Under the pieces are notes generated by a model. It made no database searches. It had not been told where the DNA came from and worked only from the letters and a program-made list of their open reading frames with translations. Source: Blastocystis sp. Blastoise (Eukaryota > Protista > Bigyra: Opalinata). Taken from it: 64,000 nucleotides of DNA. Made by a program: the position numbers and the translations under genes. Shown piece after piece: positions 47,302-64,000 of this stretch; the stretch's first letter is position 1; the number at the start of each line of letters is the position of its first letter. The stretch spans positions 1,054,001 through 1,118,000 of the forward strand of contig JBBPEB010000030.1 in the NCBI GenBank assembly GCA_039096225.1, read 5' to 3'.

Positions 47302-47577
47302 AAAATTATAAAAAAATTTTTATATTATTTTTTATTATTAAATTTTTGTAAACATATTATTTATATTATAAATAATAATAATAAAATAATAATAATAAAA
47401 TAATATTTGATAAAATAAAATAATTTTAATTATATATATATATATTAGTGGTTTAGGGTTAGGATTTAAAATGAATATAAAATAATTTAGGGTTATGATT
47501 TAGGGTTAGGTTTAATATAAAATAATGGTTTTAGATTTAATATAAAAAATAATAGATTAGTGTTAAATTGAATATAA

Positions 47578-47604
47578 GGGTTAGGGTTAGGGTTAGGGTT
47601 AGGG
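47578..47604 (+). repeat. Interstitial telomeric tract GGG(TTAGGG)4 at the right array junction
   Basis: Read directly; follows the truncated spacer ...GTTAAATTGAATATAA. Confidence 0.9.
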
Positions 47605-47878
47605 AAATGATAATATAATGTGGTAGAGTTTCTCTTTTTTTTATATTTATATAAGGGTTATCTTTTTTTAATTGGATAATTTTTTTTTAAACCAATAAAA
47701 ATAGGTTTTTAACTTTGGATTTTCTGTATTTTTAATATTTAACTTAGGAAAATAGGAATGTAGGATTCTAGGAATATAGAAATATAAAAATTAACCAATG
47801 AAATGAATAATTTTTATATTTAGAGAAACTAGTGACCAAAGTAGTCTTAGGGTAAAATCTGTAATTTGATTGGTTCGT

Positions 47879-47941: not shown

Positions 47942-49946
47942 TTTAATATGTTTTAGTAAAACCCTTGACTTTTGTCAATTCATTTTTTATTTATTTTAAA
48001 ATTTATGAATTAATTTTTATTAAACCTAATGATTTTTATATATTTATTTTTATATTTACAAGTTAGTATTATGTATATAAAAAAGTAAGGAGACGCCATT
48101 GTTGGAATATGTTTGAATTGGTGGTTACGTATAGTGTATGGATTCTTGTAAAAGGTGAGAATGTGGTGCTATTCATGGATCTGCTTGAAATTTTGCGTTT
48201 TAAGAAGTTTAAGGTAAGAATGGGAAGATTTCCAATTAGGTTAGGTGTTGTGTTGTTGAAGGTGATGTTATTGAATAAAAATTCGTAGCATCAGCATTTC
48301 CCATTGTCTTTGAGGTTGTTCCTTTGGTCTAATTTATTGTTGGTGATGCTATTTGTGAGTTTCTATATGAATAGGTGTTGTGAGTGGAAGTTGAGGTTTT
48401 TCAAAGGTATGTAAAAACTAGACAATTAACTTAATTGTCTAGAAATATTTTATATTATATATATTTTTTTATTTATAAAGTTTATATAGGTGGTCCTAAA
48501 TGATAATAAGTAAAAAAAGTATGTATATAAGTGATATTTATTGTTGAAACTATTTAAAATAGATAAAAAAAATATAACAAAAATTCAAAATTCTTTTCAT
48601 TATGCTTTCAACTAGAGGGTGTTTCACCCATCAAATAGGTATATATTTTTTATTTTATTCTATATTATTATTATATAGGTTGTGTGTGTATTGGATATAT
48701 ATATAATATATAATAAAAATGAAAAAATGATAATAAAAAAAGAAAAATTGATTGAATATCAATTTTTTTTTTTTAATTTTAAAATTAATTTTTTAATATG
48801 TTTAAAAGATAATTATAATATAGTATGAATACAATTAATGTGAATTGACATATAGACACTATTTAAATAAATAAAAGTTAAATTTAAAGACATTTTGTAA
48901 AAAACTATGAATTCACTCATGTTGACTTGAAGAAATAAAAATGACTTTTATGAAGTTATTATAGACTAATAAACATATGTGTATGATAATAACTTGTTTT
49001 CTAAACAAAATAGTTTAATAATGTTAAGAATTGTGTGTATAAAAGAATATTTTAAAGAAAAATGTCACAGTCTATTAATAATAGAGTACTAAAGTCATTA
49101 AAAAGTTGAGTCATGAACAGTTTGAAGATAGTTGAATGAGAGACTTTGACAAGATTTGTTTTAAATATTTTATAAAAACATGTTAAATGAATTTATAAAG
49201 TGATTATTAATAAGAATTAAACATAATAATAACTTTAAGAAAATAATTAATAAGAATGAGAAGATAATGTTTTAGTAAAGTATAAAATAAAAAATATATA
49301 TGATGACTAGAGATCATAATAAGTATAAAAATGAATAAATAATGAATATTAAGAGTATCAAAATAAATAAATAAATAAAAAGAAGAATTTTGAAAAGAAA
49401 GATAAAGTTCTTATTGTAATTTTTCTTTTTATTCTTATTTTATTATTTTTAAATAACATATATTATTATTTTGAATTAAAATTGATACTATTCATTGAAT
49501 AATAGTCTATAGTATACACTAGTATGACTAAAAGTTGAAAAATAGACTAAAATATTTTTTAAGAATGGATGAATTGTGTGTAAACATAGTTATGTAGTAT
49601 GCTTATATAAGTTTAATATGTTATAGTGAATATTTATAATTGAAAACATATGATAAATTAGTTTATTTTATATAATAATTTTATAATTACAAAAGTAAAA
49701 GTGTAAATATTGAGATATCAAGATGATATTTGTAATAAGAGTTGTAAATAAAGGTAGAAAAGAAAGAAATATTAATTAAAAGACTATATTACTATTTGAA
49801 TATTTTTTAATTTCTTTCTTTTATAAAAAGCAATGAAACCTTTGATGATTCACTAACTGAATATATCTATATATATATATATAATAATAAAATATATTTG
49901 ATTATTTTGAGAGTATAGATACTTGAAATCTATATATAGAATAATA

Positions 49947-50019
49947 ATTTAAGTCAGGAATTGAACCTGAAATATATATATATATATATATATATTCTAT
50001 CCATTTATAGAACTTAAAT
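49947..50019 (-). ncRNA. Non-canonical tRNA-like cloverleaf, copy A (73 nt)
   Basis: ATTTAAG / TTCTAT-AAATGG-ATAGAA / (TA)n arm of 24 nt / TCAGG-TTCAATT-CCTGA / CTTAAAT. Confidence 0.65.
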
Positions 50020-50161
50020 AATAAAATAATAATATATTTTAATATATTAAATTCATCTTCTATATATATATATATAATAGAATTATAATATAATTTAATA
50101 GAAAGAAAAATAAATATAAATAATATATATACATAATAATAGAATTATAATAAAATATAAG

Positions 50162-50231
50162 ATTTAAGTCAGGAGTTGAACCTGAATATATATATATATA
50201 TATATATCTCCATCCATTATGGAGCTTAAAT
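50162..50231 (-). ncRNA. Non-canonical tRNA-like cloverleaf, copy B (70 nt)
   Basis: ATTTAAG / CTCCAT-AATGG-ATGGAG / (AT)11 arm / TCAGG-TTCAACT-CCTGA / CTTAAAT. Confidence 0.7.
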
Positions 50232-50349
50232 ACAACCAAAAAAGGGTACTAATAAAGTTCAATAGAAGTATATATTAATATAAAACAATATATATATATA
50301 AATAATATAAACAAACAAATATATATAAAAAAATAATATATATAGAATA

Positions 50350-51163
50350 AAATGTAGCCCATACGACCAAGAACAATCCCAAAACATATAATAATGACTA
50401 AAGAGAGATATAAATAAATAGTATCATATATGAAGAGAAAAAAATTACTATAAAATAGAAATAATTATATAGTTGAATAATAATAATTATATATATATAT
50501 ATATATATATACCTTTTAAAGAATGAATAAAATAATATCCAGGTACTAACTGCACTATAGAGCCTATATAAAGAAAAAATAAGAAAGAATTAAAATAAAA
50601 ATAAAAATATATATATGATATATCTATATACCTTTAGCCTCAAAAGGATGACGACCATCAGTAGAAGACTTATTAACAACAGAAGAACCTATATATAAAT
50701 AAAAATATAAAAATAAAAACAAATGAATGACAACATACCTTCAAGACCATGAGTGGAGTTCATATCATCATCAATGGCACCAGCAACAGAATCCACAACA
50801 ACAGAAGAACCTATAGATAAATAAAAATATAAAAATAAAAACAAATGAATGACAACTTACCTTCAGGACCAGACGATAACCTTACACCGTCATCAATACT
50901 GGACACCATGGACATAGAAGAGTCTAAGATAATATAAAATAATAAAAAAAAGAAAGAAATGAATAAATATATACCTTCAAGACCATATTGATAAGGACCA
51001 TCACCATCAACGACATCCATACTTGTATTCATTTGAGTAGAAGAACCTATATATGAATAATAAAAAAATAAATACAATACATACTTGACCTTCTCCGAGA
51101 AAGGTAATTTTTTTTGTTCAAGGACCTCCGCCTTGATGACAATCAGCCTTTTCTAGGCATCAT
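50350..51163 (-). pseudogene. Spliced gene built from tandem phase-1 mini-exons (Ser/Gly/Asp-rich), with an in-frame TGA at codon 7
   Basis: MMPRKG*LSSRRRS..., then exons SSSTQMNTSMDVVDGDGPYQYGLE, DSSMSMVSSIDDGVRLSSGPE, GSSVVVDSVAGAIDDDMNSTHGLE and GSSVVNKSSTDGRHPFEAK, separated by GT-AG introns, two of which are nearly identical. Confidence 0.55.
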
Positions 51164-51409
51164 ATTTATTAATTTAATAAAAAATAAGTATTTTTATATA
51201 GAAAACGAAAACACATTCATATTTGAACTTTTGTAAAATAGGGTCAATATTTAAAATATGCATCTTTAAAAATATTAGGAATCATAATTAACCTTGAATT
51301 TTCATTAATTTTATTGCTAAACTGATAATTGGGTCATTTTTTGTTAAAAACATTTTGGGTACCCAAAAACTATAGTTTTTTACATTTTTTAATTATTTGT
51401 TTATATTAA

Positions 51410-52560
51410 ATAACTAAGTATGTTTTATTCATTAATTTGTTGTTGTATAGTTATATTTTTTATATTTATTTATATATATATATTTATTTATTTAAAATAA
51501 TACACTTTTCTATAGGATTCTCTTGTCTTTGCCTTGGTTGTGGTGTTAAGTGGTTCTTGAAGTGGTCCTGGTTGTGTCAAATGGATTATTTCGTGTCAGG
51601 TATACAAATATATTATTTATTTCTTAACCTCTGCTTATTTTTTACTAATTGTTTTTTGTTATTATTTAATTTTATTATCTATTTTATTTATGTGTGTATT
51701 TATATCATTTATTAAATTATTTATTATCTATTTTTATTCTATAGGAAAAAGAAAAGTAATGGATGTGTTGAGGTCTTCATTTCTCGATGTTTTTTTATTT
51801 ACTCTGTGGTATAAAGTTTATCTATTAGGTATATATTTATTTATCTATTTATTTATTTACTTATTTATTTATTTATTTATATATATATATATTTATTTAT
51901 CTATTTATTCATTTATTTATTTATTTTCTATTTTTTATAGGTTTAATAGTCTTCTTATTTTTCTTCCTTCTTTCTTTTTCCTTCTTCCTCATACTTCATC
52001 CTTTCTTCTTCTTACTTCCTGCTTCCTACTTCATTCTTCCTTCTTCTTCATTCTTCCTTCTTCTTCCTTCTTCCTTCTTCCTTCTTCCTACTTCCTACTT
52101 CCTACTTCCTACTTCCTATTTCCTACTTCCTACTTCCTACTTCCTAATTTCTACTTCTTCTTTCTTCCTTCATCCTTCCTACTTCCTACTTCCTACTTCT
52201 TCTTTCTTCCTTCATCCTTCCTTCTTCCTACTTCCTACTTCCTACTTCCTACTTCCTACTTCCTACTTCATTCTTCCTTCTTTCTTCCTTCATCCTTGAT
52301 TTTTCCTACTTCCCCATCTTTGATTCTTCTTACTTCCTTCTTCCCCATCCTTGATTCTTCCTTTTTCCTCCTTTCTTCTTCTTCATCTTTGATTCTTCTT
52401 ACTTACTTCTTCCTTCTTTCTTCTTCTTCCTTCTTCCTTATCCTTCCGTCTTCCTCCTTCATTCTTCCTTATCCTTCATTCTTTCTTCTTCTGACTTCTT
52501 TCTTTCTCATCCTTCATTCTTCTTTCTTCTTCTTCCTTCTTCTTCATCCTTCATTCCTAT
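51410..52560 (+). other. Putative spliced unit with low coding potential, ending in a polypyrimidine tract
   Basis: Three GTAT...TATAG intron-like segments separate G-richer exons (~51515-51599, ~51744-51827) and a final C/T tract. No clear start codon or recognisable domain. Confidence 0.4.
51950..52560 (+). repeat. ~600-bp polypyrimidine tract with CTT and CTTCCTA repeats
   Basis: (CTTCCTA)n runs at ~52084-52147 and ~52223-52268; almost no G on the + strand. Confidence 0.9.
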
Positions 52561-52602
52561 TATATATATATATATAATTATTATTATTATTATTTAAATT
52601 CC

Positions 52603-52669
52603 CTTTATGCTCTAGAAGGAGAGAAACAATCATTATAGATTGTTTTCAGGTTCAATTCCTGACATGAAG
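52603..52669 (+). ncRNA. Non-canonical tRNA-like cloverleaf, copy C (67 nt), followed by T-runs
   Basis: CTTTATG / CTCT-AGAAGG-AGAG / AAACAATC-ATTATA-GATTGTTT / TCAGG-TTCAATT-CCTGA / CATGAAG, then TTTTATTTTTC. Confidence 0.75.
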
Positions 52670-54001
52670 TTTTATTTTTCTTTTTTTAAATAATTTATTT
52701 ACATATTATATATATATATATTATCTTTTTGACTTTATTTTCTTTTTTTTTTAAATTAAAATTTTAATTATCAATAATATATACATATATCTAACTTTAC
52801 ATAGTTTTTTTAACAAATTATCCCAACAATCTTCAGAATGAGTAACAATCCATTCAAGCATAAAGTATTACTCATCATCAAGACTGCTTTTATCAATCAA
52901 AATACATGTGTAAAACTTGATTTATTGATTTAAACTCAATTTTAACTATTAAAAGTAAACAAACCAAACACACATGTTGACTTTAAAACTTTAAATTCAA
53001 TGTTAAAAGCTTATTTTTATAGAGTGGACATGAAATACTAATTTAAACAAAAAGCAATGAAAACAATCAACTCTTGATACAACTTTACCATTTGACAAAA
53101 CACTTATCCACAATATTTTCCAAAGTTCTTTTGTTAAAGTGTTTATATAGACATATTATGTATAAAATGAAAGTCAACTTCTTGAATCTCTTTGTTTAAG
53201 ATAGTCTTTAAAACATTTTGGCAAATTGACAACCTTTAACTTATTATTTAAAGCTAATATTTTAATATTAAACTTGATTTAAACACTTAAACACAACTGT
53301 CATCATCATAACACTTTTAAAGACACTTTACCATTTGCTCATACACTTTGATCAGAATAGTTTCGTCTCTGAGTTTAACATAATATAGGTCATACACTCT
53401 AGTTTAATGAATAAACACTCTTATTTTGAATCTCGTCCTCTAAGTCACTCATTTGTACATTTTTTAAATTTAGACAGACATCTAGCTTTTTAAGAAAGGA
53501 TAAAATTTGAAAAATTAGAAATGAATTATGAATTCATATATATTTTTTTAAATTTGTTGTTTATATGAACATACTAGAACTGATTACAGTGATTATAGAT
53601 GTTTCTAAGCAGTGTTCATGATGTGTTAGTATTTATTTATAAAATTTATCATAGTGTTTTACATCATTCTTATAGGTTTTCCATTCTGGATATCCTCTTC
53701 CTTTCAGACATTCTCCTTGACCAGTTTTAGAAAGGTACATAACATGGACGCGTTGTTTTATTTATTATAAGGTATTTTATTACATTTCTTTTTTAATTCT
53801 CTTAGATTTCTTGGTTATTCTCGTCAGTACTTCTTCTAAATAACAAGTCAAGACAATATAGAGCGTATATAAATATATCTATTTAATTTTTTATTGCATT
53901 GGCACATTTCTCTTTTTTCTCTTTTCCTATCAAAAATATTCATTTGATTTTTAGTTACTCTATTCATATTTTATATATATTTACAATTTATATATTATAT
54001 A

Positions 54002-59045: not shown

Positions 59046-64000
<4,955 letters not shown>

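Follow-up and report, generated by a model that had tools for sequence, protein, structure and literature searches.

Introduction

To our knowledge, tRNA-shaped signals for the 3′-end processing of nuclear RNA polymerase II (Pol II) transcripts amount to very few cases, namely MALAT1 and NEAT1 in vertebrates and GUT15 in Arabidopsis. The vertebrate mascRNA and menRNA combine a small D arm holding two guanines with a longer anticodon-like stem and a compact loop, have no junction linkers, and present an elbow, made by the D-loop guanines and the T loop, as the feature that RNase P and RNase Z recognise (PMC11693755). GUT15 is described as giving rise to a non-decoding tRNA-like molecule from a Pol II non-coding transcript, and it is an intron-encoded, single-locus case (PMC6152437). 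Here, we analyse a stretch of 64,000 nucleotides of Blastocystis sp. Blastoise (Bigyra: Opalinata; assembly GCA_039096225.1, contig JBBPEB010000030.1, forward-strand positions 1,054,001 to 1,118,000), hereafter referred to as the window, which contains three tRNA-like cloverleaves designated A, B and C.

An earlier note on this DNA had taken these elements to be structurally selected, non-decoding mimics of tRNA. The analysis described below is in line with that proposal, and we tentatively favour the view that A, B and C represent a portable module carried by transposons, a linker-less tRNA mimic of 60–76 nt and of the mascRNA type, which may be processed from Pol II transcripts. As judged from titles and abstracts, the papers of the open-access library searched that deal with both Helitrons and tRNA-like elements report no tRNA-like element on Helitrons or other DNA transposons, and the one that names Blastocystis together with tRNA-like elements is on an unrelated matter; in the genome paper of a tortoise Blastocystis (PMC12129017), the words tRNA and Helitron do not occur.

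Results

Three cloverleaves with abutting helices

The three elements of 67–73 nt which the earlier note had located were all recovered, each in its place and orientation (Table 1). Every one of them folds as four arms, i.e., a 7-bp acceptor stem, a D-like hairpin, a middle hairpin and a T arm, with z-scores against shuffled sequences of -2.05 (A), -3.46 (B) and -3.42 (C). As had been claimed for the U8-N9 linker and the variable loop, the helices abut directly, with no linkers at positions 8/9 or 26 and none in place of a variable loop. Cloverleaf A has a 6-bp D stem, a 24-nt (TA)n middle arm and the T loop TTCAATT, and B, which shares the strand of A and precedes it by 143 nt, has a 22-nt (AT)n middle arm and the T loop TTCAACT. 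In C, the middle arm, also of 22 nt, is a true hairpin with an 8-bp stem and a 6-nt loop, so that the range of 22–24 nt given earlier for this arm agrees with our measurements. On re-reading, the D loops of all three elements end in GG, the D stems of A and B differ by two compensated pairs, and compensated pairs also distinguish the acceptor stem of C, in which there is one U·G pair, from the acceptor stem of A/B, all as previously described. The 17-nt T arm, TCAGG-TTCAAYT-CCTGA, is present in three exact copies in the window, compared with 0.00 expected from 100 shuffles.

A genome-wide family

Where the earlier note had spoken of a family of three, the genome (33.34 Mb in 34 contigs, 23% GC) contains 239 exact copies of the T arm, with 0 in a reversed control, and the family as a whole reaches about 270 copies or more when some 30 with variant T arms are included. 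Subtypes 1 and 2 were counted by means of D-arm and acceptor patterns, without use of the T arm. Subtype 2 was the commonest with 88 copies, whereas subtype 1, to which C belongs, had 67, and the T arm turned out to be exact in 147 of these 155 copies. Other classes account for a further 49 copies with the exact T arm. For the A/B class, a search that made no use of the T arm gave at least 22 copies, many of which have variant T arms, and there are 10 further A-like copies with the T loop TTCGATT. More than 20 other copies have the same sequence as cloverleaf C. Many members of the family are located within a few kb of contig ends.

A covariance model, a tool also proposed by the earlier note, was used to fetch further loci of the family. 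The model (R1) was built from 12 sequences, A and B not being among them, and it scored C at 91.4 bits, B at 62.3 bits and A at 51.1 bits (E = 1e-11 for A), with family scores of 51–93 bits. Specificity was controlled by a scan of metagenomes with a D-loop/T-arm pattern. Among the matches listed, we found ordinary bacterial and phage tRNAs, such as tRNA-Arg(CCT), and no relatives of the cloverleaf family, and those tRNAs with the same T arm reached at most 35.5 bits on R1. The identical 17-nt T arm is, in fact, present in ordinary bacterial tRNA-Arg(CCT) genes.

Compensatory changes and selection on the fold

Covariation was assessed in a set of 28 distinct sequences from loci fetched either by the T arm alone or by the covariance model; where the T arm drew the loci, the other stems played no part in choosing them. 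Stem positions paired in 96.7% of cases, compared with 36–42% when the 3′ partners were slid by 1–3 columns, a control that is corrected for relatedness, and with 79% in shuffles, which are not. Changes on both sides were observed in 15 of the 24 pairs, distributed over the acceptor (5/7), the D stem (2/4) and the middle stem (8/8), and none of 500 shuffles, which again ignore relatedness, attained the covariation score. The T stem was invariant in this set, in part because the T arm served to draw the loci, and the signal of the middle helix is in part trivial, given that (TA)n copies contribute to it; the remaining signal comes from the acceptor and D stems and from the non-microsatellite middle arms. 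Examples of the latter are the stem variants TAGCAATC/GATTGCTA, TAACAATC/GATTGTTA and TAGCAATT/AATTGCTA, with G·U intermediates also present. Among the non-Watson-Crick positions there were 15 G·U and 5 A·C (p ~0.02), an excess which suggests that it is the sense strand that folds.

Conservation followed the same boundaries. Cloverleaf C and its copy at locus L014 were identical at 68 of 68 positions, while their flanks were only 76% (126 nt on the 3′ side) and 59% (96 nt on the 5′ side) identical, with 92% in the best-kept block of the tail. Together, these comparisons indicate that selection acts on the folded strand and keeps the 12-bp acceptor/T coaxial stack, the T loop TTCRA.. and the two D-loop guanines, which, by analogy with tRNA, can form an elbow with the T loop. 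A lack of homologues or of covariation, which the earlier note had named as one outcome that would speak against its proposal, is thus not what the genome shows. Another such outcome, an ordinary family of short interspersed nuclear elements (SINEs) or miniature inverted-repeat transposable elements with neutrally decaying stems, applies in so far as the elements are transposon-borne but not with regard to the stems, which covary.

Absence of canonical tRNA features

In agreement with the earlier expectation that no canonical tRNA would be called, ARAGORN reported none in the window, and none in 12 loci of the family. Similarly, Rfam returned no tRNA match to the cloverleaves at the gathering threshold, at E ≤ 10 or at E ≤ 1, and nothing tRNA-like or mascRNA-like at A, B or C even at E ≤ 10; the only matches in the window at the gathering level were those of a 52-copy 5S rDNA array. 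Genuine nuclear tRNA genes of this genome score 60–75 bits on the Rfam tRNA model, and none of them is found at a family site.

The traits retained from canonical tRNAs are the 7-bp acceptor, the 5-bp T stem, the T loop TTCRANN and the GG of the D loop, whereas the U8/N9 and N26 linkers, the variable loop and the 5-bp anticodon stem with its 7-nt loop are missing. Since the middle loops vary freely in length (5–7 nt) and in sequence, the middle stems have 8–9 bp and the detectors call no copy, a role in decoding is not to be expected. Taken together with the stem covariation, this supports, as well as sequence alone allows, the interpretation of the cloverleaves as structurally selected, non-decoding tRNA mimics.

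Microsatellite middle arms and register-shifted copies

In every copy of the A/B class (at least 22 paralogues), the middle arm is a TA microsatellite, the length of which ranges from 12 to about 30 nt depending on the copy, and from 12 to 24 nt among the paralogues of A. The earlier note had regarded this arm as replaceable. It does hold that a (TA)n arm is tolerated and varies in length; however, such a repeat is self-complementary by construction, and therefore shows which content is tolerated rather than covariation. A relative with the T loop of B, L078, has a true hairpin at this place, and hence the arm of A and B was probably an AT-rich hairpin which then slipped into a microsatellite.

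The B-then-A tandem is itself a repeated module that recurs elsewhere in the genome at the same spacing, with the two T arms approximately 213 nt apart. Cloverleaf A and one of its paralogues are identical at 48 of 49 positions outside the repeat, compared with 75% in the neighbouring spacer. In this same paralogue the B copy is degenerate, its D stem being partly lost to the repeat and its T stem changed, so copies of the A/B class can decay. The A-like copies with TTCGATT, in which position 57 is G instead of A (G000:C13:1318194, C14:22991, C17:17962 and others), each follow a B-like copy at a distance of about 220 nt, often near contig ends, which suggests that the A/B pair module has an older and more widely spread branch.

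Ten or more B-like copies, designated B′ and read by hand, pair as 8 + 4 bp in the acceptor and the T stem, respectively, and not as 7 + 5. At G000:C13:1318412-1318472 (-), for instance, the outer pair of the T stem is lost, and the first base of the D stem pairs with the base that follows the T arm. This register shift leaves the coaxial stack at 12 bp, and it is the 12-bp acceptor/T stack that RNase P and RNase Z measure.

Two divergent units in the window run into cloverleaves

Positions 48554–53472 of the window consist of repeat sequence. Within it, 49650–51677 has a counterpart of about 95% identity on another contig, 48554–50350 is 86.5% identical to locus L073, an identity of 92% was measured over 48800–49946, and 50702–53468 is 74–79% identical to many other copies. 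In the tail downstream of C, a block from +300 to +620 shows an identity of 0.9–0.96. Homology to the paralogues stops at around 53472, whereas other copies continue, and the copy in the window is therefore truncated. A search for terminal inverted repeats around the module gave only low-complexity noise.

The module is symmetric about a short region with the palindrome TTTTGGGTACCCAAAA, which presumably belongs to a bidirectional promoter (Table 1). On the minus strand, the last exon of an apparent gene composed of mini-exons lies a few hundred nt upstream of B, and B and then A follow in the sense orientation; in a paralogue that is about 95% identical (L075/L076), the cloverleaves are preceded by five consensus introns in the same orientation. 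On the plus strand, a spliced unit has exons at 51516–51599 and 51745–51828 and a third one from 51941, the last two being separated by an intron at 51829–51940. This third exon enters a polypyrimidine tract of about 600 nt (51950–52560), which stops 40 nt short of C. The exons have conserved counterparts in the paralogues L008 and L021, and the only open reading frames (ORFs) of the unit are low-complexity translations of the CT tract. Both divergent units thus run into a cloverleaf in sense.

Table 1. Positions of the cloverleaves and of associated features in the window
Feature	Position	Strand	Basis
Cloverleaf A, 73 nt	49947–50019	-	Sequence reading, fold, covariance model
Cloverleaf B, 70 nt	50162–50231	-	Sequence reading, fold, covariance model
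Cloverleaf C, 67 nt, subtype 1	52603–52669	+	Sequence reading, fold, covariance model
Repeat sequence downstream of A	48554–49946	-	Identity to paralogue loci
Apparent gene with repeated mini-exons of ~70–75 nt (putative coding)	50510–51165 (approximate)	-	GT..AG introns
Palindrome TTTTGGGTACCCAAAA between the divergent units	51353–51368	.	Sequence reading; same place in a paralogue (L031:3720–3735)
Spliced unit without a convincing ORF	51516–52560	+	Splice sites read; intron by motif scan
Repeat tail downstream of C	52670–53472	+	BLAST against fetched loci, boundary alignment, conservation profile

Other features of the window were noted in passing. Positions 52833–52886 (-), which belong to the conserved tail and follow C at a distance of 165 nt, on the strand opposite to it, match the snoZ105 family (RF00145) with a C box UGAUGA and a D box CUGA, at 28.7 bits compared with a gathering threshold of 45 (E 0.063). 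The 52 tandem 5S rRNA genes occupy 6408–47174 (+) with a period of about 800 bp, and they are followed, just to the left of the cloverleaf module, by TTAGGG repeats at around 47450–47605, which are first degenerate and then perfect. Two ORFs at 61787–62977 (-) and 60146–60880 (-) encode, one, a long poly-Ile/poly-Tyr run and, the other, a very Asn-rich sequence.

Host repeats and a Helitron-like terminus

When the cloverleaves were masked, the flanks of 91 fetched loci fell into 7–8 clusters with nothing else in common. Between the two host families of subtype 5, homology starts 6–26 nt before the cloverleaf and extends 200–330 nt after it. For subtype 2, the upstream boundary is sharp in every locus, and the order is unique DNA, A|CTAGGG, a GC-rich hairpin, a (TATATTA)n minisatellite and the cloverleaf. 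The A|CTAGGG boundary was found on the cloverleaf strand in 16 of 16 independent subtype-2 loci, and the other strand accordingly reads ...CCCTAG|T. Helitrons end, on the 3′ side, with a GC-rich hairpin followed by CTRR, the next base being a T of the host; the hairpin, CTAG and host T of the other strand therefore constitute a Helitron-like 3′ end. This terminus is present in 105 copies genome-wide, and subtype 2 lies in antisense 210–700 nt inside it in nearly every copy. No such terminus was found in the window, and A, B and C therefore cannot be assigned to an element of this kind.

The minisatellite between terminus and cloverleaf (L002–L061) varies in length from about 100 to more than 600 nt. 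ORFs for a PIF1-like helicase, DUF659 and TLDc upstream of subtype 2 were considered as genes of the host element and rejected, given that the boundary puts them outside the terminus, in the flanks of the insertion site. In nine loci (L012, L015, L021, L049, L051, L052, L055, L059 and L060), the DNA outside the terminus has ORF or intron motifs, and in 9 of 9 the outside gene runs in the sense of the cloverleaf, antisense to the Helitron. At L015 and L051 the ORF reaches right up to the terminus, and the element was therefore inserted into genes of other transposons. Finally, L031:249–7083 (G000:C1:119249–126083) is a unit of 6.8 kb repeated head to tail, in which subtypes 1 and 2 are both present, together with the divergent promoter module, the mini-exon gene and the terminus with hairpin and CTAG; it looks like a tandem array of a non-autonomous Helitron-like element.

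Discussion

In the reading that we tentatively prefer, i.e., processing from longer Pol II transcripts, the cloverleaf would reside in a longer transcript, where the tRNA-processing enzymes would recognise it. In the window, the part of this transcript would fall to the two divergent spliced units, one ending in B/A and the other in C. An RNase P cut at the 5′ edge of the cloverleaf would generate the 3′ end of the upstream transcript, while an RNase Z cut at its 3′ edge, followed by CCA addition, would release a small tRNA-like RNA. The middle arm, which these enzymes ignore, is free to vary, even to the extent of a (TA)n microsatellite; the conserved part is precisely the one with the elbow that they recognise. 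With regard to the enzymes themselves, neither RNase P RNA (RF00009) nor PRORP (PF16953) had a match in the genome; control genomes gave none either, and this negative therefore carries no weight.

The arrangement of introns is consistent with such processing. In 41 loci, consensus intron motifs were found 27 times upstream in sense, 0 times upstream in antisense, 0 times downstream in sense and once downstream in antisense, counts which include paralogous copies and, in subtype 2, motifs from DNA outside the element, and which lose some of their weight for that reason. The sense-upstream introns occur in at least four unrelated within-element contexts. Moreover, a pyrimidine immediately precedes the acceptor in 9 of 9 classes, and in 8 of them it is a T. 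A number of other observations weigh against release from Pol II transcripts. Upstream of subtype 2 there is no transcription unit encoded by the element, only the minisatellite and the Helitron-like terminus, and this subtype would therefore depend on read-through from outside. Neither an A-rich tract nor a MALAT1-like triple-helix element, of the kind of the element for nuclear expression (ENE), was recognised upstream of the cloverleaves. Furthermore, the T runs of C, subtype 1 and subtype 5 could be terminators of RNA polymerase III (Pol III), and the TA-rich repeats just upstream in several classes could be TATA-like elements.

The latter two points are central to the alternative that survives best, according to which the cloverleaves are autonomous Pol III mini-genes with an internal B box (GGTTCAAYTCC), TATA-like TA-rich DNA upstream, termination at T runs and pre-tRNA-like trimming to a stable small RNA carried by transposons. 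We consider this explanation unlikely, even though it accommodates a good part of the data. The B box is intact and invariant across all classes. A T4 run begins immediately 3′ of the acceptor strand of C, at +1, subtype 1 has T5–7 at +5/+6 and subtype 5 a conserved T6–7 at +13; these runs resemble those of the genome's own nuclear tRNA genes, in which a T4–T7 run almost always follows the discriminator by 1–6 nt, often with a second run after it. Several classes have (TA)n or (TATATTA)n repeats immediately before the cloverleaf, and the lack of an upstream gene within the host element of subtype 2 also speaks for this alternative. However, the A-box region is short and a poor match to the consensus, and there is no T4 run within 20–45 nt of A, of the main subtype-2 variants or of the L013 and L078 classes, the distance free of such runs being 30–45 nt for A and the main subtype-2 copies, while T runs and TA repeats are common anyway at 23% GC. 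In addition, autonomous genes would have no need for a position downstream, in sense, of spliced units, as is seen in at least four independent contexts. Under Pol III transcription and Pol II processing alike, the same enzymes would trim the cloverleaf.

A second alternative places the function at the DNA level, the B box being a chromatin site for TFIIIC, either a boundary or a landing mark for transposons, with the RNA fold incidental. The T arm with its B box is indeed the sole invariant helix, and clusters of copies are seen near contig ends and within repeat arrays. Nonetheless, we deem this improbable, as it leaves unexplained why the acceptor, D and middle stems change in a compensatory manner, why the GG of the D loop is conserved and why G·U outnumbers A·C, and since the exchange of a pair between acceptor and T stem in B′, with the 12-bp stack kept, is a property of the folded strand. 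It is still less probable that the cloverleaf works as a single-stranded DNA structure which folds in the strand displaced during rolling-circle transposition and ends or regulates that process. The set place of subtype 2 relative to the hairpin and CTAG terminus would suit this role; however, the sense strand of the cloverleaf is opposite to the 5′..CTAG-3′ strand, on which the G·U pairs become A·C mismatches, the module is also present in contexts without a terminus, the window included, and a DNA hairpin would need no tRNA-specific loop sequences.

Finally, the view of the elements as functionless relics of decaying tRNA genes or tRNA-derived SINE heads, passively copied, can be drawn from their being repeat-borne, from the many copies that are near-identical recent duplicates, from the one degenerate B paralogue and from the microsatellites in A and B, but it is largely refuted by stems that covary rather than decay, by the perfect preservation of C between flanks of 59–76% identity, by the module being the only thing shared by the 7–8 contexts, by fixed places inside larger repeats with no poly(A) or simple-repeat tail after the copies (target-site duplications were not looked for), and by the gap between ordinary tRNAs with the same T arm (≤35.5 bits) and the family (51–93 bits).

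Returning to the processing of Pol II transcripts, a broader scenario can be put forward with considerable reservation. DNA transposons of a stramenopile might have evolved a mimic of the mascRNA type independently of vertebrates and might share it among unrelated families as a cassette. The hand-off of transcripts to RNase P and RNase Z could then provide transposon-borne genes or non-coding RNAs with 3′ ends that are independent of poly(A), or else cut entering read-through transcripts, with release of a small tRNA-like RNA. If the cloverleaves do work like mascRNA, this would be a case of convergent origin, and of the trick being used by mobile DNA, and it would represent a new way for transposons to exploit the RNA enzymes of their host. 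The family would also offer a large natural set of variants on what RNase P and RNase Z need in a substrate, including microsatellite arms and the register shift that keeps 12 bp.

Compared with the known systems, the closest likeness is to mascRNA and menRNA (vertebrate MALAT1 and NEAT1/MEN beta). In the 28 sequences read, the present family shares with them the acceptor/T arm, a reduced D arm with two guanines, a long middle stem, the lack of linkers and the lack of decoding, and C and other subtype-1 copies appear to lie at the end of a spliced, apparently non-coding unit with a polypyrimidine tract. By contrast, there is no sequence homology and no Rfam match at E ≤ 10; the vertebrate RNAs have one or two copies, whereas here there are hundreds on stramenopile transposon-like repeats; no upstream triple-helix or A-rich element accompanies the cloverleaves as far as recognised, and processing is, in our case, what the arrangement suggests; and some copies follow an apparent coding gene, while others stand in antisense near a Helitron-like end. 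With Arabidopsis GUT15, the family has in common a non-decoding tRNA-like RNA that would be released from a Pol II transcript, but it is multicopy and transposon-borne, and it is located after the last exon, not in an intron, as far as readable.

The tRNA-derived heads of SINEs are similarly multicopy, repeat-associated and related to tRNA, with an intact B box. The present elements differ from them in having no poly(A) or simple-repeat tail that we could see (with target-site duplications left aside), fixed places in larger DNA repeats, stems that covary instead of decaying, and remodelled junction linkers and anticodon arm. The extra-TFIIIC sites of yeast are, like these elements, B-box sequences outside true tRNA genes; they consist of the B box only, with no conserved cloverleaf and no covarying stems, both of which the present family has. 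Lastly, tRNA-like structures are known from viruses, either as the aminoacylatable 3′ ends of RNA genomes in the tRNA-like structures of plant viruses or as Pol III genes of a DNA virus, in the tRNA-like/pre-miRNA genes of gammaherpesvirus 68. In those systems selfish elements copy the shape of tRNA to make use of host RNase P, RNase Z and CCA-adding enzyme, and the Blastocystis cloverleaves may do the same, with the difference that their carriers are cellular DNA transposons.

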